Below the pieces are notes generated by a model, which worked only from the letters and a program-made list of their open reading frames with translations, ran no database searches and was not told where the DNA came from. The translations under genes and the position numbers were made by a program. DNA of 63,264 nt, filler included, from Reticulomyxa filosa (lineage: Eukaryota > Protista > Foraminifera): NCBI GenBank assembly GCA_000512085.1. It is 15 parts of 15 records of this genome, joined end to end, with 100 filler letters (N's around TTAATTAATTAA, not from the genome) between each part and the next. Parts side by side here need not be neighbours in the genome. Positions count along the whole stretch, not along the records: positions 1 to 11,949 come from ASPP01033883.1; 14 more parts are not named here. One strand, given 5' to 3'. Shown here piece by piece: positions 1-11,949 of the stretch; position 1 is the first letter of the stretch; every line of letters starts with the position of its first letter.

Positions 1-420
1 ATATATATGCATAATGCGATAATATGGCAATATCATCACAAACAGGTAGTTGATAAAATTAAAAAAGTTATTATCTTCATCATATTCAATTGATAATCCT
101 GTCTTTTCACAGAATAACAACTCATTAATTTTGTTTATTTTATCATTTCTTGCACAAAGCAATGATATTGTGCCTAAAATTAATTGGTAAAATATTATAT
201 TTAATAAATTGAAATCAAATAACTAGTAGTATTTGGATAATAGGTGATAAATAATAAATCTTTGTTGCTTCCACCAATTAATGCACGTGCTCCACGATAA
301 TCATAACATCTTCCAATGATAATTGGATGATTATGATTGTTTGTGAAAGGAATCCATTGATTGCAATTGTTTGCTTGATTTATAGTTACTGCAAACACTC
401 ACATATTTCATCATCAATGT
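1..420 (-). pseudogene. Kelch-like repeat family fragment
   Basis: NQWIPFTNNHNHPIIIG...ALIGGSNKDLLFITYYP matches NEWIPLTDNDNKPVII...AIIGGSNNNLLFIFYYP of the 3226-4326 exon. Truncated and interrupted. Confidence 0.65.
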
Positions 421-628
421 ATGTACAGTGTTCAAATAATGTAATATTCAATGGATACTCACAGATAAAATTTGAATTCATTTTTGAAGACAATTTAAAA
501 CTCCAAAGGAAAAGCTGTAAAGCGACATTGTAAAGCAATTTTAATTTCAAGTAGTCTGACAAACCCCTTTATGGATACAAAAAATCTAAGTACTTATCGT
601 CATCATCTAGGCGAAGATCAAGAGAAAA

Positions 629-1444
629 ATGGGAAATACTATCAGTAAAAAAGAGTTCTCAACACAGCAACTAGTAGTACGTTCATTTCAATACAGTCTT
701 CAGAAAAGTTGTCTTTTAAGGTTTAATTGCATTTGCTTTGAGATAAATCTTTCAGAAAAAGAAAAAATTAAAGTAATTATCCAATATTTGATTCGAATAT
801 TAAAGATTAAATTAGGATGGATCAATGATTTTGACAAAATTATTATTGATTATGTTATGTTATTTTAATGTAAAAAAAAAGTTCAAATATTTATTTGATA
901 TAATTTTGTCATTATTAAAACACAGGTGGTAATGGATATACAATTTGTTCAGGATCATATGATAAAACCATTTGTATATGGGATATTGAAACAAGTGAAC
1001 AATTGACTGTATTTAAAGGACATAAGTATTGGATTAATAGTGTAAAATATGGATCGAATGGATTATTAAATACAATATTGTCTGGGTCAGATGATTACAG
1101 TATTCGTTTGTGGGATATTCGATCTAGTCAACAAATTCAAATGTTTAATGGACATACAGATTATGTACGTGCTGTTGAATATTCACCGTTTGTAGTGGAT
1201 AATACTGAAGTTAGTGGTAATTCAAATGTGATATGTTCTAGATCATATGATAATACAATTCGTTTTTTGGGATATTCGATCAAATAAGAAGGAATTGTAC
1301 ATGATTTATGGAGCTGATGAAGATGGTGGAATTAGATCACTTAAATTGTTTGAATTGAAAAACAAAAATAGCAATGGAAAATCAAATAATTATTGTGGTA
1401 TTAATATATGTTACGGTTCAGTCAAAGGTAGCATTCGTGTTTAG
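629..1444 (+). pseudogene. WD40-repeat gene, shortened and frameshifted
   Basis: Short first exon, conserved 'GWINDFDKII' exon (743-853), then WD repeats (SGSYDKTICIWD, GH...SGSDDYSIRLWD). Frameshift in the T-run near 1263-1268. Confidence 0.75.
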
Positions 1445-2078
1445 GGAGAGACATCTTAACAATGAAGTTAAGATGTTAAATATTTTTTTGAAATTTATTT
1501 GTAAATAGTTGATTCTATTTGAATTGAATAATTAATAATCTTAACACAATATCATTGTTCAGTGAACACATAAGACGTAGCGACTAATCGATTATTTTTA
1601 ACTTTTTTTTATTTGATATACCACAGAGACAAATTAAGTATTTTCTCTTTGTGGAGTGAAAGCAAACGCTAAACACGCATCAGTAGAAAATTGTGGTATG
1701 GTGCAACTTTCAACCAAAAAACCTTTCAAAAATATTTTTTTCAGAGCCACTCCAGTTTCAGTAATAAAAAACTCTACTTGTTATCCTGAACTCTTCCAAA
1801 AATTTTTTCAAATTGTCCCAAACCGTTACAACTAAAACAAGTCAATGTATCACTTTCAACTCAGAACAAATTATTTTATAAAATTAAAACAAAAGCTGTT
1901 CTTATCTTATTACTTATAGTAAATGATAGTATCTAATTGCATTGGGGATTGAAATTTGATTTGATAATTGAATTGTTAATTTATCTAGCTTTTCTGCTTT
2001 GTTCCTTGAGGGAAAGAAACACGCTTCCATTTTTAACAAGTAAAATCAACGATTGTTGTCATATTGCAAATATTTTGT

Positions 2079-4326
2079 TTACAATACCTTCCATTTATGT
2101 ATTGTCCCGCTTTGAGAACAAAAAACAATAGTATTATTATCTGAAGAAATATCCATTCCAGTTATATTACCGGACTGTCCATCCATTTCCTGTATTATTA
2201 CTCCTAACCTTGTATCCCATAGCCGAACCATTGAATCTCTAAAACATGATATAATAATGTGTCTATCCGGAATATATTTTACATGATATCCTCCAGCATA
2301 ATTCGAATTCAATATCTTCACTTGTGTTCCTAGCTCCACGTCCCATATTCGAATTGTTCTATCGTCCGAAGATATAATATATTTGCCATCCGAAGAAAAT
2401 TGTGCCGTCATTACATAATCAGTATGTCCTCGCAATTTATATATTAATTCGCCTAATTCTATACTCCAAACGCTAATTGTGTCGTTCGTTAATACCCATA
2501 TAATTTGTCGACCATCCGGTGAAAATTGTACATCGTTTACATGATAATCTTCTCGAAAAATTTGGATTGTATGTCTAGATTGCACATCCCATAATCTTAT
2601 TGTTTTATCTTCTGAGCAAGATACAATAATCTTTCCATCTGGTGAAAATTGTGTTTTCATTACAGGTCTTTTATGTTGCGTTAATGTTGCTATTTCAGTA
2701 CCGGATTTTATGTCCCATAATCGAATGGTGTTATCATTAGAACAGGATACAATCATTGTTCCGTCTGGTGAAAATTGTGCATCTCTAACAAAACTTGAAT
2801 GTCCTCTTAATACTCGAATTTCTTTTCCAGATTCAACATCCCATATTTTAATTGTATGATCCTGTGAAGATGAAACAAGTGTAGCACCATCTGGTGAAAA
2901 CCGCACGCTATTTACAGCTCTAGTATGTCCTTGAAATACCATTGACGGCTTGTAAAATATTTGCTAACATTTGTGCAAGCATGTATGTTCTGTTATATCT
3001 GATTAAAAACAATGCACATTATATATATATGAACAAAAATATACCATAATATATCGTAAAATGATCACGTTAAAATCATCAATCCATCCTGTATTATTGA
3101 CTGATGACAAATGCATCCATTGTTCAATTATCATTTCAATTTCCTTTTTTTTCTTTTTTTTTTCAATTTGATGCAAATCCTTTAATAAAAAAAAATCATT
3201 GCCACATACAAAAAAATTACATAACTGTCAACTTTTTGACTTCCGGATTTTGTCTCATTTTTTTCCATTCCATTCTGCATTCTTCGATATCTCTCAGTTC
3301 TTTATCTTTCAACATCCATTGTTTCTCCATTTCTGTCTCTTTTTGTATCCATTCGCTCACCTGCGTTTTCATGTGGTATTCATTAGTTGTCCCAAAAATG
3401 TGTATAAAATGTTTGTCTTCGCTCATTATGGCAATGCAATCATCCAATGAAATTGGCAAACTCTTTTCATATTTCATCCATGTATTATCACTTAAATAAT
3501 ATCTGTAAATCTTTTTTAAAGTATCAGTGTCACTGCCCTCTTTGCCTCCAAAAAACAATATCAAGTCATTGAAGCGAACACATCCAGACGAACGGAATGA
3601 CTTAAAATTTTTATAAGTTCGTGCTTTATGATACTTAAAAATATTTTTGTCTTCATCATATCTAATTGACAGTCTTATATTTTGATCAAATACAATCATT
3701 TCATTAATTGATTCATTTGTCGCAAAACAACAACGTTCCATGGCATTGTCAATTGGCAATTTACTATTCTTTACATATTTAAATGTGTTCAAATTAAACA
3801 CACGAATTTTCTTTGGATAATAAAAGATAAACAACAAATTATTATTGCTGCCTCCAATAATTGCATTCATACCACAATCAATGATAACTGGCTTATTGTC
3901 GTTATCTGTCAAAGGTATCCATTCATTGTTTCGTTTTTTCGTGTTTTCATTCTCAACCTCCTTCTCATCGTCATCAGTATTCCAAACGCTCACATACTTC
4001 ATTGTCAATGTATATTTTTCATCAAATAAACCATATCCACCAAAAGATAACAATGTGATGTCATCTTTATCATTATTCTTGGTCACGCGCTTCACCACGC
4101 AGTGGTCATCAAATTTAGCCTTCTTCGGATAAGAACAAATAAATTTATACTGGTTTTTGAGGATATGATATGAATAACATGTGTAATATCTATAACTTCC
4201 ACAAATTATAATTTCATTTTTATGCACGACATATCGCATATCGTGAAGCGCAACAGGTAAAGGAGCCAACGTTTGAAAAGAGTCAGTCACATTCATTTGC
4301 TTTTCTTTCATGTCAGTTATCTCCAT
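2079..4326 (-). CDS. Kelch-like propeller plus WD40 propeller protein; 3 exons (4326-3226, ~3143-3045, 2963-2079), ~695 aa
   Basis: GT-AG phase-0 introns join the 369-aa ORF (GG-containing Kelch-like repeats) through the 'GWIDDFNVII' exon to seven WD40 repeats, with no stops. Confidence 0.8.
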
Positions 4327-4963
4327 CTTAATAAAAATGTGACAAGTGGATCTGTCCTTACTTTTATTTGTTCAAATAATTTAAAACGCTTAAAAATCTT
4401 TTTTCATTATGTTTGTCCCTGTACAAACGTTCAAGATTTGTACTTTTCATCGAGTTAAACTTTATACATTATTGCTTTTCCATAAAAAAAAATGAGTATG
4501 CATTGCGTTGAAATATTAAAAATGCATGATGGAATATTGCGTATTCTGTAATTTATTGTTTTGTTAGTTGTTTTTTCTTGCTGCCTTGCACAATAAATTT
4601 TACAAATTACTTATTCCAAACTTTGTTTTTTTGTCTCATAGCCCGTGGCGTTAGTTTTTTTCAAATATTAAATAAGTACATTGCATTTCCATGATTAACA
4701 CAAATACTATGAATGTGTATTTTTTGTTTTATTTCATTACAATTTGCACTTCTATTCCTCGGAACTTGTTTGTGGAGATTTTGTTCGAGTAAAAAGAATA
4801 ATTGATGAAAGAATAAGAATGGAAAAAGAATTGTTGCTAAAGCCTTGTTGTAGCATGTACAAGTTTCAAAGAATTCAAAATAAACTTGTAGTTGACAAAT
4901 CAACAAGGCTTTAATTTTGGTTTAAAAAAACAGAAATATTGTTACTTGTTTGTCTAAATGCTA

Positions 4964-6156
4964 TCATCGCCAGATTCGAATGGTGTTGTCATAAGAACAT
5001 GACGCAATTGTACTGCCGTCCGATGAGACATCAATTCCTGTTATCCAATGTGAATGGCCTTCCAATTTCTGTATTACATGTTGAGATTTTATATCCCACA
5101 GACAAATTTTATTATCATTTGAACACGATACAATAGTTTGACCATCTGGAAAATATTTCACATCATTCACAATATCGGAGCACTCTCCGAACTTTTTCAC
5201 TTCTTTTCCTGATTCTATATTCCATATTCGTATTGTTTTATCCCATGAACCGGACACAATAGATTGGCCATCCGGAGAAAACTTTGCACTCGTTACAAAG
5301 TGGTAATGCCCAAGTAATTGCTTTAATCTTTGACCTGATTTTGCATCCCATAAAGCAATAGTTTCATCATAAGATGACGATACAATCATTTGACCATCTG
5401 GTGAAAATTGAACATTCCGTATACTATCAGTGTGGCCTATCATTGTTTGAATCTCTTTGCCAGTATTCACATCCCATAGCCGTAGTGTCTTGTCGAGTGA
5501 ACATGACACAATATATTTACCATCTGGAGAAAAGTTTACATCCCACACTGAATCCACATGTCCTTCAAATTTCATTAATTTTTTTCCTGATTTTACCTCC
5601 CAAAGGAATATCATTTTGTCATCTGCACAAGATACAACAATATGTCCATCGGGGGAAAATCCTGCAGCGTCGGCGCAACTGGAATGTTCTTTGAAAATAT
5701 GAATTTGCTGTCCGGAAGAAACATCCCATATTCGTATCGTGTCATCGTTTGATGAAGAAACAATCTTGCGACCATCTGGGGAAAATCTAATAGAATTTAC
5801 TATGTTCTCGTGTCCTTCTAAAACTTTCAATAATTTAAAATATTTGGCCTGTTTTTAAATATTGATTGATTAACAATAACATAACGTTTTACTTCAACTA
5901 AAAAGATAAAATAAAGTAAAATGACGCAACATATTTGACAACAATTTTATCAAAATCATTAATCCACCCTAATTTAATATCCAAACTTCGAAGCCAATTT
6001 TGTATTATTACTTTTATCTCTTGTTCTGCCTATTTTTAGTTATTCGTAAAAAAAAAAAAAAAAAAACATGTTTTAATAACAAACACACTTGCGTGGACAC
6101 AGAAAGCTTACCAACTGTGGTGATACATTCTCCTTTTCGTTATTTTCAGTAGTCAT
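4964..6156 (-). CDS. WD40-repeat protein; 3 exons (6156-6112, 6029-5931, 5848-4964), ~342 aa
   Basis: Seven regular GH...FSPDG...D.TIR.WD repeats. Canonical phase-0 GT-AG introns. Confidence 0.9.
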
Positions 6157-6967
6157 TCTTTTCTCTATTTGGATTTGCTGCTAAAGGGCAAATCAATTCG
6201 GATGATTTAAAGTTGACGTTGAATTTGTTGAGCTTCATTGCTTTCCTTTTTTTTTTTGTGATAAACCTGTTTACATATTCCTTTATTCTGATCTCTCCTA
6301 ACTGTATTTAAATTAGCTCTCCTGCTACTCCATCTAAGTTGTTTTAAATTTTAAAAAATCTCGAGAAATTGCAAGTTAAAAAGAAATTTATCATAAAAAT
6401 AGTACTTTAAGAAGATATCACGTGCACTGGAGAAGAGCAAATTATAGCTTTCAAAGCAGTTAGAAAAGTCAAAAGATAAATATAGATCGTTTTTTTGTAG
6501 CATCATTATTTTCAACATCAAAACGATTGATATTACAATAAAAGAGGACGTGCTTCTCAAGTGTCTCCGAGATTATTTTTCACTATCAATTTAGTTTCTG
6601 TACAATTTTATAAGTCAAAAGTCATTCGTGTTAAGGACTACGTTATTGTGAAACAAATTTTTCACATTGCAAGTATGTGTTTAAAAAAAAACCTTAATCG
6701 CTGGGGGCATTTTTTCATTTGACACGTGTAGAGGCTCAGTCTAATTTATGAAACTTTTTGCGTGCTAGAATAGAAAGGCAAAACTTTTTCTGGAAGGTAA
6801 AACAAAAATGTTTGTTATTGTGTAAATAATGTCAGCCTTGGTTAACATATCGTCTGTCAAAAAAGAACGACAGACACCGAGATAATTTGTTATGTGTGGA
6901 ACATGTGCGCATGGTTGCGATATCATTTAGCTATTGAAATAAATCACAAGTTGTATATTCTTGTGAC

Positions 6968-8003
6968 TCACAATGATTTCCAAAGACGGATTGTTCGGTA
7001 GTGAGAATAAGATATGATTATATTACTATCTGCTGAAACATCAATTCCTATTACAAGGTCGGAGCGACCTTGCATTTTCTGTTTATCTACACCTAAGCGT
7101 ACATCCCATAATCGAACAGTATTATCTAATGAAGATGACACAATAGTTTGATGATCCGAAAGGAATTTTGCACTAGTTACCCTATCCGAATGTCCTTCAA
7201 ACTTTTTTACTTCCACAGCGGATTCCCAATCCCATATTCGAATAGTCCAGTCCAATGAGCTAGATATCACAAAGCGGCCATTTGAAGAGAACAGTGCAGT
7301 CATTGCATAACTCCGATGTCCTTCCAATACATTAATTTTTGTTCCAGAATTCCAATCTCAAATTGCAATTGTTGTATCTTCCGATGCCGATACAACCCGT
7401 CGACCATTGGGCGAAAATTGTACATCAAGCACCGCCCTTGAATGTCCCTCCATCTTTTGAATCTCTAATCCAGATTGTACGTCCCATATTCGAATTGTTT
7501 GATCATATGACCCAGATACAATACTTTTGCCATCTGGTGAAAACCGTGCATTTGTCACAGCACCTGAATGTCCCTCCAATTTTTTAATTTCTGTGTACGC
7601 TTTTGCGTCCCATAATCGAATAGTTTTGTCAATAGAGCATGATACAATCATAGTTTCATCTGTCGAAAATTGTACAATATTTACACAATCGGTATGTGCT
7701 CTCAGTACTTGCATCTGCTTTCCCGACATCACGTGAGCCCGAGATAACTTTGGCTCCATCTCGTGCAATTTGAGCATTACATATTTCGGCAGAATGTCCT
7801 TGAAGAGTTTTTAAAGGCTTGAAATATCTCATCTGTTTTATTGTAATTGCACTTTGCTTTTTTTTTTTTGCAAATTCAAAACAAATAAATTTGAATACCA
7901 GCATATATCGTGCAATGATATCATTAAAATCAGAAATCTATCCAAACTTGATAAATGACAATCGAATCCAATGATTGATTATTATTTCAATATCTATTCT
8001 TTT
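6968..8003 (-). pseudogene. WD40-repeat pseudogene
   Basis: Same exon layout as its neighbours, but two Trp positions are stops (~7939 and 7358) and there is a frameshift near 7730. The first exon is absent and the retroelement lies in its place. Confidence 0.85.
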
Positions 8004-8544
8004 CTTTGTTTGTTTTTTTTTTTGTAGTTGTTAAAATTGGCACACTTTATTTGCAAAAAAAAAAAAATATATAAACCCCTTTTGTCATCGATCAAGGGTA
8101 GACAGCGGAAGTGGCCAACAGATACCACAACTACTGACAAACGTTGTCAGTCTTACCACGAATCGCCACCATTCATTTAGTTCTCAGTCTGTCGAACCAA
8201 CTACATTTCTACACTGCAACATCCCAACATGCTTCAAACAACTAATTCACACAACAGTCAAGGCCTCGTATCGTAACTCGCGCATGACCACTGCGCAATG
8301 TGATATCTGCGATGTCGAGCTGCAAGATAGCGATCAGATCTTTCACTTCCCAATCAACGAAGACATCATCGGCCACAATCACGGGTATGATATGTGTAGC
8401 AACTGCGCCTCCAAGTCTGCTCCAAAACACTCACCGACACCACCACCATTCACCCAACAAAACCACCACACAACAAGTCCACCAAGGCAGAATACAATAC
8501 CAAACGATTCCCTCATCACCCCGCAACAACAAGCAAACCAAACC

Positions 8545-9527
8545 GTATACGTATACGCGCGGATTCGCCCAACTTTACCAACCAACAATCAATAACATTG
8601 CATCAAATGCACTAAAGAAACAATTACCACTTTGGGTCCACACAGCAAACACTATCCCTTTCGAGAAGTCTTCAACGAACATTCATCAAACTCCTTATGC
8701 AACACAGTAATCGATTCCATGCTACACAATGTCATGATGGGATTCAATGCCATGCTGTTCGTCTACGGCCAAACAGGAAGAGGAAAAACTTACTCGGTTA
8801 TTGTAGAACGACAGCCAGAAAACATTAGTATGCTTCCACACATGTTATTGTCAGCACTCAAGAAACCTTTCATCTCCTCAATATCATTAGCAGCAGTCGA
8901 AGTGTTCGGACATAGAACCCCACTAGTCGAATTTTTTGATCTACTTGACAACCGCAACCAAGACAACGATTGGACAAAGAAAATGTGTTCAACGTCAATC
9001 GATTCCGACCGGATCAGTAGGATTGCTATCGAAAACCCGAATGACGTATACGATCAAGTCAAACGCGCACGCCAAGCCTCACACATAGCACCAACAGGTA
9101 AAAATCCAGACTCATCTCGTGTGCATATCATCTACTTCGTTTCGATTACATCAAGTGATCCAAGCGAAAACACAGAATCAACTCGGTCATTCATAGTCGC
9201 TGACTGCGCAGGAAGCGAAGGAGAAAGCACGTTCAGCGAAGAATACATCCGCACAACCCAGGCCCAACACCGGAACGCTCGACAACGTGAGGCAGGCGTA
9301 ATTAACACTGGCCTATCCCAACTTCAAACAATGTTTGGCGAACTTCGAGAGCGCGGATGCCTGACTCAGACCAGAGGCAACGGCCTTCGTTGGATCATGC
9401 ACTCATTAGTTAATGTACGCACACAAATTACATAATCTTCACACTATCAGCAGCCGCCAGTAACTCAAAAGCAACTATCGCTACCTTAAACTTCGCCACG
9501 CAAGCCAAACTCGTCCGAGTACGGCCA
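8545..9527 (+). pseudogene. Divergent kinesin motor domain within the retroelement ORF
   Basis: VYVYARIRP (beta1), YPFREVF, GFNAMLFVYGQTGRGKTYS (P-loop, 8764-8793), NPDSSRVH (switch I, 9103-9126), ADCAGSE (switch II, ~9202-9219), REAGVINTGLSQL, and after a 1-nt frameshift IIFTLSAAASNSKATIATLNFATQAKLVRVRP (alpha6). One in-frame TAA at 8593. Confidence 0.9.
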
Positions 9528-9860
9528 GAACGAGTCGTTTCCTCCACGAAGAAACTCCACGCGATTGTACGCAATATCGAAACAACCAACGAAGCAAGGG
9601 AAAACAGCCGGTCTCCATCGACGGCAATCAAATCAATAATTAATTCATCAAACACAAACACAACTTACCCGCCTTCCAACGAATCACCAACACAAAATTA
9701 TACACTACAGCCCGACGAACAGCAACCCGACCCACATGCACATAAGCCTCCCATATTCGACAGTGACACCGATGACGACGCTGAACATCAAGCCCCATCC
9801 ACTCACCATCCAAATCATTCCAAGGCAAAACAGTATCACGACGTATACACTAAAGGAAAT

Positions 9861-11949
9861 TACTCGTGTACAGTCCCGTTCTGTTCGCAACAAGGAGTAA
9901 AGTGGGCATCGGACGTAAGCTTACACACACATGAACCTACACGCACAGGCAGGCGACATCACCAAATCCTACCTGCAGTTTTTCCGCCGGATCGTTTGTA
10001 TCCGTTGTCGCAGAACATGTGCCATGTCTCATTCACAGAATGGAATGCACAAGAAATGTCCAGTAGTCACAGAACGTGAACAGAATCAACATGATAATCA
10101 TCCACAACAGCGGCACGATCTAGCCATTGGCCAGGATGAAAAATGGGAAATCTCATCACCAGAAGCCATCGTTATACACAACGCAAGTCTACTACCACGA
10201 GCCCCGAAATGCATGATGGCAGAAATAGCCGCATGCGCATCAAAATGTCTACAAGACATAGTCAAACTCAATAGCAATACATCATGGAGTCGCTGGGCAA
10301 TGTTCATGCGAGTTATTATGTGGAAACCAAGTAACCGAGGTGGTACTCGCGAAACAAACCACACTATCGCAATTCTCCGCGAAATAATTCAGCGATGGAA
10401 ACAGAATGAACTGCAATCACTATGGACAGATTTTTGTAAACACTCGACAGTATTAACTAGAGCATCCCAACCCGCCAAATCCCCCACCAAAGCAAACAAC
10501 CAATACCTCTGCAAGCAGTTCGCTGCCCTTGGTGAATACCGTAAGGCGTGTAACGCATTGGCATTCGAAGGGAGATGCACGTATAACGAAGCCACAGTCC
10601 AAGCGCTAGTAGAAAAACACCCGCACGAAGAAGAACCCGACACAGAAACTGAAGCCTATTTGAAAGCCAAAAGAATCAAGTTAAGCCCCTTTACAGTCGA
10701 CGAATCTATATCTTATATCAAAGGCCTCAAACGCTCCTCTTCCGGAGGCCCAGATCTATTGGCAGCGCAACATCTCCTGGACTTCATCCCGTTCGAAATT
10801 GAATCATCCGTCCTTTCCAATTGGACCCAAGTCGCGCAACTCATCGGCGAAAACAAAATACACAAAGATGCCGCGGCCGTCGTTTACGGTGCACGACTAA
10901 TCGCAATCCCAAAACCTGACGGTTCCCCGAGACCAATCGCAATTGGTAACATGCTTCGACGAACAGCGGCCTCAATACTATTCGCACGCCACAAACCCGA
11001 AATCCAAAAAATCGTCGGCCCTCGTCAACTAGGAATCGAAGTCCCTTCCGGAATAGAAGCCTTCACCCATGGATTTAAGGCAGCAGTACGTTGGTCCAGT
11101 TCCCAAAACGAGAACATCGCAGTCAAAGTCGACTTTACAAACGCCTTCAACATCGTACGGCGTAAAAAATTATTGGAATTAATTCACACAAGATTACCGG
11201 AGCTCTTCCCATACGTAAGCGGATGCTACGGGCATCACTCACCACTATTTCTCATCACAGTAGAAATCGTCAAGTCAAGAACAGGCGTCCAACAAGGAGA
11301 TCCCCTCAGCTGCGCATTATTCGCAATCATTCTAGCCGACGCACTCGAGTCCGCTCTCAATGGACAGAATCACGTACTATACTGGGCAGCCTACCACGAC
11401 GATCTGACAATCGCTGGGAAGTACAACAACGTCTCTTCGGCATTGTCCTCATTACGTTCAATGGAATCATCCCATGGCCTGAAAGTCAATTTGGAAAAAA
11501 GTGTGTGGATCTCTCACTCGGCGCCGCCGTCAACTCACAGAGCAATTAAATTCAACTCTTCCTTCGAAACGACGTTAGCATGAATCGCCATTGGCACCCA
11601 GGCAATAACGGACAAGTTCATGGAAGAGCGTATCAAAGAAGTCGAAGCTTTATTCGACAAAATCCTGCAGCTGGACCATCTCCAAACATCACTACTGCTC
11701 ATCCGGTATTGTATGCAAATATCCAAAGTAAATTATTTTCTTCGCGTCAACTATACAACGGCTACATCCAAATGGGGCAAATCATTTGATAATGCACTTT
11801 ACAAAAGTATTGAACTACTCCTTTGCCGACCAATTACTGAAATTCAATAGAAGCAATGTCAATTACCTCTTAAGCAGGGTGGATTAAATCTGCGCACAAT
11901 CGAAGCTTATTCAAGCGCGACATTTCTTGCATCAGCTTCAGCGGCAACA
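9861..11949 (+). pseudogene. C2H2 zinc finger plus non-LTR reverse transcriptase (CRE-like), interrupted by a frameshift and two stops
   Basis: YSCTVPFC...SLHT(H)MNLH finger, then SSGGPD, RLIAIPKPDGSPRPIAIG, QLGI, VDFTNAFN, GVQQGDPL (QGDPL at 11293-11307), AYHDD (YHDD at 11392-11403), GLKVNLEKS, TLA*IAIG and Q*KQCQLPLKQGGLNL. Confidence 0.93.

Follow-up and report, generated by a model that had tools for sequence, protein, structure and literature searches.

A kinesin motor domain in the reading frame of a poly(A)-tailed non-LTR retrotransposon from Reticulomyxa filosa

The window analysed here, a stretch of 63,264 nucleotides (filler included) from the foraminiferan Reticulomyxa filosa, holds at positions 8068-11949 a decayed copy of a poly(A)-tailed non-long terminal repeat (non-LTR) retrotransposon, the 3' end of which is cut by the edge of its contig (C33883). 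According to its predicted protein, a single open reading frame (ORF) of this element encodes, in this order, a ZZ-like zinc (Zn) module, a kinesin motor domain, a disordered linker, zinc fingers of the C2H2 and CCHC types, a reverse transcriptase (RT) and a C-terminal CCHC plus endonuclease-like domain, the last part being read from sister copies. The kinesin is an integral part of the element rather than adjacent sequence, because the architecture recurs, ORFs run through it uninterrupted, the kinesin is selected like the RT, and its origin lies in the cellular kinesins of foraminifera. As a whole, these results support the first-pass annotation of this DNA, which had proposed, from the window alone, a retrotransposon with a kinesin motor fused to its RT.

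Recurrence of the kinesin-RT arrangement

The kinesin-linker-C2H2-RT order was found in at least six diverged R. filosa families and on one unrelated metagenome contig (L056, from ENA) with three copies, and the same order and spacing were seen in C25431, C45651, C23056, C4819, C26273, C27115, C2760, C25516, C29371, C27610, C34136, C41850 and all three L056 copies. The pairing read from one locus in the first-pass annotation thereby extends to more than 12 contigs in addition to L056. The copies were grouped into family A (the window copy C33883, C25431, C44427 and C25221), family B (C35467, C45651, C23056, C4819, C18948 and others, with a kinesin ~50% identical to that of A), family C (C26273), family D (C27115), family E (C2760 and C50145), family F (C25516, C29371, C27610, C34136, C41850 and others) and family G (the three copies on L056). 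Searches of the whole assembly identified C25431 as a second copy, 95% identical and covering the first 2759 bases of the feature, while C23056 and C45651 matched the window element with 65-73% DNA identity in the kinesin and RT parts alike. The element DNA of L056 is 65-71% identical to the R. filosa copies.

All analyses were made on natural open pieces, without repaired or consensus sequence. Single open frames cross the junction in several copies, with neither a stop nor a target-site duplication separating kinesin from RT. On C2760 (L051), 902 uninterrupted codons, read directly, lead from upstream of the kinesin into the pre-RT region, and the open-frame column of the match table gives for this copy (1-5124) a frame of 1708 aa that includes the RT and reaches the end of the endonuclease-like domain. 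The same column gives a stop-free frame of 1831 aa on C25516 (minus strand, 178-4881; kinesin-like part 3769-4881, C2H2 to C-terminus 178-3189) and one of 1379 aa on C29371 that spans the kinesin and RT parts. Furthermore, a frame of 662 aa connects the kinesin with the pre-RT region in copy 2 of L056, and C27115 (L054) has a 702-aa Zn-plus-kinesin frame and a 1108-aa RT/endonuclease frame, with one frameshift in the linker between them. Two GenBank proteins, ETO34218.1 ('kinesin family member 4, partial') and RFI_29435, each carry both Kinesin and RVT_1 according to Pfam. As a side observation, the two frames of C27115 overlap by ~315 nt in the linker (757-1072), which would fit a single indel, a sequencing error or a real two-frame arrangement.

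Beyond these copies, a scan of JGI metagenomes with the conserved RT motif returned only four distant RTs (26-34% identity), none of the four with a kinesin, and a homologue search with the thumb and endonuclease regions found close relatives only in R. filosa and L056, all other matches being 24-31% identical.

Conservation and origin of the kinesin domain

The PF00225 profile, with a curated cut-off of 29.3 bits, scored 95 bits for the window copy, 142 for L056 copy 1, 90 for L054, 86 for P0001 and 41 for family F, and the family B domain matched kinesin-1 and kinesin-3 structures in the PDB (E 3e-18). Compared with the reference motor motifs (P-loop GQTGSGKT, switch I SSRSH, switch II DLAGSE), those of families A (GQTGRGKT, SSRVH, DCAGSE), B, C and G are near-canonical, those of families D (GRTGTGKS, PSRGH, DLASFS) and E (GHSDSGKT, SSRGH, DCAWAG) are partly changed, and family F has lost the ATPase motifs while keeping the part from alpha4 to alpha6, with a score above the Pfam cut-off. 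A short neck-like segment after alpha6 (..TAG.VKV.P..) is common to element and cellular kinesins; the coiled coil of the cellular proteins is replaced in the elements by the low-complexity linker. An AlphaFold2 model of the natural 461-aa frame of L056 copy 1 reached a mean predicted local distance difference test score (pLDDT) of 79, with most of the motor core above 90, and Foldseek placed KIF1A, KIF14, CENP-E, Eg5 and kinesin-1 on top for this model (E ~1e-23, template modelling scores by target 0.67-0.83).

Codon comparison between families (Nei-Gojobori method) shows purifying selection on the kinesin, at about the strength seen for the RT. With synonymous divergence (dS) saturated, the proportions of nonsynonymous (pN) and synonymous (pS) differences between families A and B were 0.25 and 0.74 for the kinesin (nonsynonymous-to-synonymous rate ratio, omega, ~0.09) and 0.26 and 0.73 for the RT (omega ~0.11), and third codon positions differed about twice as often as first or second ones. 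The two sublineages represented by L056 copies 1 and 2 gave omega values of 0.29 for the kinesin, 0.34 for the linker, 0.15 for the RT, 0.17 for the thumb and 0.13 for the endonuclease domain; copy 3, the frames of which include out-of-frame ends, was excluded. Comparisons within families gave omega values of 0.6-0.7, which fits copies that decay once they have inserted. Across families, the kinesins are 20-50% identical to each other, and the linker has diverged past alignment.

A maximum-likelihood tree of 46 kinesins united the element kinesins with one cellular family in a single fully supported clade. In this tree, A, B and G form a clade (97/92) that is sister (96/83) to cellular kinesins of ~600-690 aa, namely RFI_19552 of R. 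filosa, sequences from Ammonia sp. transcriptomes (MMETSP1384) and many marine metatranscriptome contigs, and C, D, E and F form a second, long-branched and basal clade (97/94). The best tree has these two clades, and an approximately unbiased (AU) test did not reject one clade for all element kinesins (p 0.31). The tree of the RT and pre-RT regions recovered (A,B,G) at 97 and (C,D) at 94, its main split agreeing with that of the kinesin tree. Moreover, an intron-bearing host kinesin gene on C7360, compared exon by exon without a joined spliced model, has exons 34-57% identical to the element kinesins, with family-specific motifs in common. The phylogeny thus places the source of the domain in a cellular foraminiferal kinesin family, in line with the earlier idea that the element had captured a motor.

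Structure of the window copy

Contig C33883 belongs to a highly fragmented assembly (50,809 contigs, N50 3.6 kb). A composition scan of this contig gave a guanine-plus-cytosine (GC) content of 0.42-0.50 from position 8001 on, compared with 0.26-0.39 upstream, and the element block shows a strong skew of A over T and of C over G on the + strand up to the contig end. Positions 8068-11949 form a single A-rich intronless block of ~45% GC within host DNA of ~30% GC, and together with the Pfam matches this bears out the order of Zn module, kinesin, linker, C2H2 and RT in one block of even composition (Table 1).

The ORFs from 8284, 8632, 9931 and 11620 all share frame 1. Frame 3 is stop-free at 9414-10076 and carries the end of the kinesin (..TLNFATQAK..), the P/S/T/D-rich linker and the first half of the C2H2 finger; at ~9919 frame 1 resumes with the rest of this finger, the second zinc knuckle, the pre-RT region and the RT. 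Translation of the window thus agrees with the bridging frame noted in the first pass, as does the sister copy with the two losses that were held to compensate for each other: C25431 has exactly the missing bases, at ~9429 and ~9923, and reads through the motor end, the linker, the whole C2H2 finger and the second knuckle in one 255-aa open frame. A Pfam search, suggested in the same annotation, placed Kinesin (PF00225) at 8596-9432 (E 5.3e-27, 95 bits) and RVT_1 at 9919-11580 (E 6e-19). The motor of the window copy has YARIRP, the P-loop GQTGRGKT, switch I SSRVH, switch II DCAGSE and, at its end, ..TLNFATQAK LVRVRP; the linker carries an acidic FDSDTDDDAE, to which DIDxDAVP corresponds in other families.

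At the 5' end, similarity to C25431 begins at the A-run, which moves the start of the element from the 8075 given earlier to ~8068. The A-run itself represents either the A-tract that was targeted (or a duplication of this target) or what is left of an upstream copy, namely its poly(A) tail; the T-rich stretch at 7960-8054, queried as a possible remnant of the 3' untranslated region (UTR) of such a copy, gave no significant match. The 12 nt deleted from the window copy hold the likely start ATG: C25431 reads ..FPMESVEPTT.. in the ORF frame, its in-frame ATG lying ~10 codons ahead of the first C-x4-C of the Zn module. In the window this C-x4-C is at 8215, so that the module begins upstream of the called ATG. 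At the other end, the contig stops at 11949 inside the RT thumb, and the endonuclease part of this copy lies off the contig; family A continues on C25221 (L031) with thumb, CCHC, endonuclease-like domain, stop, a short T-rich UTR and an A-rich tail.

The window copy is a dead member of its family, with two frameshifts, three in-frame stops and a lost start codon, as had been concluded before. The expectation that repair would yield one ORF of more than 1200 codons stood in part: the two indels are real, and five lesions would have to be removed, the three in-frame stops among them.

Table 1 Features of the element copy and of its host-like surroundings in the window.
Feature	Position	Strand	Basis or remark
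A13 run directly upstream of element 5' end	8055-8067	+	Common to sister copy C25431 (L002)
5' UTR, begins TATATAAACCCC	8068-8185	+	Collinear with L002 and L005; GC rises here
Site of 12-nt deletion relative to C25431	8186	+	Pairwise alignment
N-terminal Zn module, ZZ-finger-like: C-x4-C, TTVKA.Y, C-x2-C,.H., GYD.C-x2-C	8215-8406	+	Aligns with families B, D and G
Kinesin motor domain	8542-9527	+	Frame 1 until ~9431, then frame 3; Pfam, PDB matches, motif alignment
In-frame TAA early in kinesin, copy-specific	8593-8595	+	Sense codon in C25431
1-nt loss, frame 1 to frame 3	9429-9431	+	Alignment with C25431
Low-complexity P/S/T/D/N-rich linker, without coiled coil	9528-9866	+	Unalignable between distant families
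C2H2 zinc finger, split by 2-nt loss	9867-9942	+	
(AC)n run with 2-nt loss (AC at ~9923), frame 3 to frame 1	9923-9930	+	Alignment with C25431
Second zinc knuckle, C-x2-C-x3-C .. H-x5-H-x2-C	9997-10059	+	Kept in all families, kinesin-less ones included
Pre-RT N-terminal extension, conserved	10060-10905	+	Family alignments
RT core: ..GARLIAIPKPDGSPRPIAIG.., ..QQGDPL.., ..YHDD..	10906-11514	+	Pfam RVT_1, alignment
RT thumb region, cut by contig end	11515-11949	+	In-frame stops TGA 11581-11583 and TAG 11848-11850
WD40-repeat ORF or exon	1003-1444	+	
WD40-repeat ORF or exon	2079-2942	-	
Kelch-like ORF, 369 aa	3217-4326	-	
WD40-repeat ORF or exon	4964-5830	-	
WD40-repeat ORF or exon	6968-7327	-	
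WD40-repeat ORF or exon	7358-7777	-	

Upstream of the element, positions 1-8000 are host-like (26-39% GC) and contain WD40-repeat ORFs and one Kelch-like ORF. These five WD40 ORFs or exons on both strands and the Kelch-like ORF form a cluster of beta-propeller genes at 1003-7777.

Non-LTR character and insertion sites

Among solved structures in the PDB, the RT is closest to Bombyx R2 (8gh6, E 0.002). In full-length relatives, RVT_1 is the sole domain that Pfam recognises, without an Exo_endo_phos/apurinic endonuclease (APE) domain, and N-terminal zinc fingers (C2H2 plus the second zinc knuckle) are present in all families. The C-terminal ~200 aa of four copies (33-67% identical) hold the invariant motifs C-x5-C-x9-H-x3-C, GR.ARHDG, RPGDI, D.G.TH, K..K and E..GGW. 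Within this part, H..C, RH..IV and (R/K)PDI motifs align with the R2 endonuclease in a sub-threshold stretch only, and the C-terminal domain alone, queried against the PDB by profile and by single sequence, gave nothing significant. The overall layout, with N-terminal zinc fingers, RT and C-terminal CCHC plus PD..D..K-like motifs, is R2-like, and the C-terminal block is likely a restriction-like endonuclease (RLE).

The ORFs end in ..IC.HC(N/D)(F/L), after which come a T-rich UTR (90-350 nt) and poly(A), the tails being A18 after a UTR of ~220 nt on C23056 (L026), A14-20 on L056 and A/TAAA-rich on C25221. A 5' truncation is seen in copy 2 of L056, which starts within the kinesin. Searches for direct or inverted terminal repeats were negative, both within positions 7800-11949 of the window and for the two ends of L056 copy 1. 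The 5' end could be read in four R. filosa copies, namely the window copy and C25431 of family A and C35467 and C4819 of family B. In each of them, an A-run stands directly upstream of this end, with A20 on L028 (~410-430) and A11 on L029 (~2760-2770) for family B, and at L002 1-12 for C25431. The flanks beyond are unrelated between copies, and only the A-run is common to them. Moreover, a poly(A) tail abuts the 5' UTR of the next copy twice on L056. This pattern suggests insertion at A-tracts, including the tails of other copies, which would give head-to-tail arrays. No sign of the spliced-leader targeting that characterises the CRE clade was seen in the flanks of the window copy, L026, L028 and L029, spliced-leader genes not having been searched for explicitly.

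As a separate observation on L056, a 2.3-kb unit lies between two kinesin-RT copies (L056:10638-12946). It combines the start of the element 5' UTR (84% identical to copy 1) with the element 3' UTR and poly(A), and encodes an unrelated acidic ORF of 511 aa, for which neither Pfam nor the R. filosa assembly gave a match. The unit may be a non-autonomous derivative or a captured gene.

The Zn module and relatives without kinesin

The ZZ likeness of the N-terminal module is a matter of its cysteine/histidine pattern: the family D module matched PF00569 (ZZ) below the cut-off (E 0.021), and the window module had no Pfam match. The module (C-x4-C, TTV.EAY, C-x2-C, YHC, GYDLC-x2-C) was also observed alone in low-GC DNA, on L049 (C5129), L052 (C21715) and L053 (C9896), being 44-51% identical to that of family B and having no kinesin within ~1.5 kb. 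Such lone modules could stem from another element, as 5' fragments of it, or represent the host sequence from which the module was taken.

Kinesin-less relatives (C26421 (L032, minus strand), C27314, C2783 and C7617) have intact ORFs of 1.8 kaa, the N-terminal ~800 aa of which are of low complexity, 46-91% conserved among copies and without a recognisable domain. Neither hidden Markov model nor profile-profile comparison (probability 0.1%) found a trace of kinesin in this ~800-aa region of the C26421-type relatives. In the RT tree, their clade nests on the C-F side, which, together with the missing kinesin trace, points to loss or replacement of the kinesin there, or to its gain after the split of this clade.

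Discussion

The evidence as a whole is probably best explained by a poly(A)-tailed non-LTR element with a selected kinesin head, the ribonucleoprotein (RNP) of which associates with microtubules and which inserts at A-tracts. In the mechanism that we propose, the ORF protein would bind its own mRNA in cis, as is established for non-LTR elements generally. The N-terminal kinesin head would then attach the RNP to microtubules, which we consider somewhat more likely than not. In families A, B, C and G, where the P-loop and switch I/II are kept, the RNP could also be moved along microtubules, which we put forward more tentatively. A link to microtubules would help the RNP to reach the nuclei, or to stay with them, in a huge multinucleate cell, the traffic of which is described as microtubule-based (PMC2113829, PMC2288898). 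Integration would proceed by target-primed reverse transcription at A-tracts, a process that would account for poly(A) tails and 5' truncation as well as for the A-runs found ahead of the 5' ends and for the head-to-tail arrays.

Because families E and F combine intact ORFs with degraded or lost ATPase motifs, binding, i.e. tethering, is more likely than motility to be the common denominator of the families. A more ambitious version, in which the lineage encodes a working motor, the cis-bound protein walks or is carried in teams and brings the RNP to nuclei, and some sublineages have decayed to an ATPase-dead tether, is somewhat unlikely.

Several observations weigh against the explanation that we favour. 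The ATPase motifs are degraded or missing in the intact ORFs of C2760 (E) and C25516 (F), families A, B and C with canonical motifs occur only as broken copies in the R. filosa assembly, and family D, intact save for one linker frameshift, has partly degraded motifs. As no coiled coil follows the motor, one would not expect it to work as a processive dimer. In addition, the element kinesins fall into two clades and may go back to two captures instead of one. As to the measurements, the omega values are qualitative, dS between families being saturated and protein-guided codon alignments lowering pN somewhat, and the lengths of the 1708- and 1831-aa frames were taken from the open-frame column and not from directly read DNA.

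That the kinesin domain was selected for a job away from microtubules, be it as an NTPase or chaperone of the RNP, as a scaffold for host factors or as a decoy against a host kinesin of the same family, we regard as unlikely. Such a job would suit families E and F, which keep long intact ORFs despite degraded or lost P-loop and switch motifs, and also the cellular parent family, which itself has an odd L12/alpha5 (..GNGLRRVLHP.. for the usual PYRDSKLT). However, the best-kept part across all families, F included, is the alpha4-L12-alpha5-alpha6 region, which in kinesins faces the microtubule, and the retention of the full ATPase set in A, B, C and G also argues for a role on microtubules.

It is improbable that the kinesin is a neutral passenger, i.e. 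a piece of host mRNA captured at the 5' end and carried along without use. Open frame and fold persist across families in spite of kinesin identities of only 20-50%, pN is far below pS and at the level of the RT, and the linker beside the kinesin has diverged beyond alignment while the domain has not. All this outweighs, in our opinion, that non-LTR elements can acquire foreign sequence and that the L056 unit with its element UTRs holds an unrelated 511-aa ORF.

More improbable still are domesticated cellular kinesin-RT genes forming a multigene family of the host, as might be suggested by the GenBank annotation as ordinary genes and by the many kinesin genes reported for R. filosa in a recent paper (PMC13746701). 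The sequences are multi-copy with many decayed copies, have poly(A) tails, 5' truncation, head-to-tail arrays and an endonuclease-like domain, and are without introns, 15 points above host DNA in GC and under a within-family omega of 0.6-0.7, all of which argues against host genes. Finally, a chance juxtaposition or assembly chimera of a kinesin retrocopy with an RT element, for which the fragmentation of the assembly into 50,809 contigs (N50 3.6 kb) could be held responsible, is a negligible prospect, given the same junction in more than 12 contigs and an independent metagenome assembly and open frames that cross it.

Host motors are borrowed by mobile elements and by viruses, none of which, as far as our literature search reaches, is known to encode a motor itself. 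If the domain is a working motor, the element described here would be, as far as we found, the first case of a mobile element that encodes its own cytoskeletal motor. Selection on a kinesin within the ORF of a retrotransposon suggests that moving the RNP through the cell, or anchoring it, is a limiting step; for a multinucleate cell of centimetre scale with rapid traffic on microtubules, this is plausible. Furthermore, the families form a natural series from canonical to ATPase-dead motors, in which the demands of the element on this domain can be studied. Of the contigs with Pfam kinesin matches, at least nine are element copies (C26273, C35467, C33883, C25431, C27115, C2760, C45651, C44427 and C18948), one of them named 'kinesin family member 4' in GenBank, so that part of the reported kinesin expansion of R. 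filosa is transposon-borne and the gene counts are inflated.

Our literature search found no paper on a kinesin domain in a retrotransposon or other mobile element, a remark in the 2014 R. filosa genome paper being possible; the recent paper mentioned above, from 2026, states that R. filosa has many kinesin genes and adds nothing further on the topic (PMC13746701). As far as these searches reach, we are dealing with an R2-like non-LTR element with an accessory domain without known precedent.

Compared with known systems, the element resembles the R2/R4/CRE/NeSL/Hero group of RLE-encoding elements in having one ORF, N-terminal zinc finger(s), a central RT, a C-terminal CCHC with a putative PD..D..K-like block and no APE; a poly(A) tail also occurs in the CRE and NeSL clades. 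It differs from this group by a kinesin motor of ~330 aa and a ZZ-like module before the zinc fingers, and by insertion apparently next to A-runs instead of ribosomal DNA or spliced-leader genes. The cellular foraminiferal kinesins (RFI_19552, Ammonia sp. MMETSP1384 and C7360) are 45-57% identical to the A, B and G motors and have the motifs DCAGSEGE, RRLEAGCINTGLSQL, GNGLRRVLHP and TLKFA.TAG.VKV.P in common with the elements, yet these proteins have introns in their genes, low GC, a coiled-coil tail after the neck and neither Zn module nor RT. Other accessory domains of non-LTR elements, such as the RNA chaperone L1 ORF1p, the esterase or PHD domains of some ORF1s and RNase H, are likewise extra modules within the coding capacity of the element that serve the RNP stage; none of them is a cytoskeletal motor, and the R. 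filosa module is fused to the RT in one polypeptide. Retroviruses and other viruses recruit host kinesin or dynein via adaptors, by which a replication complex is moved on microtubules toward or between nuclei, whereas the R. filosa element encodes the motor domain itself. The nearest concept that we found is the selfish Ab10 haplotype of maize, which encodes the kinesin-14 motors KINDR and TRKIN (PMC7462060). Here, too, a selfish element has its own kinesin, which moves its DNA or chromatin on microtubules; Ab10, however, is a meiotic-drive haplotype with separate genes of cellular type that act on knob repeats, without fusion to an RT.

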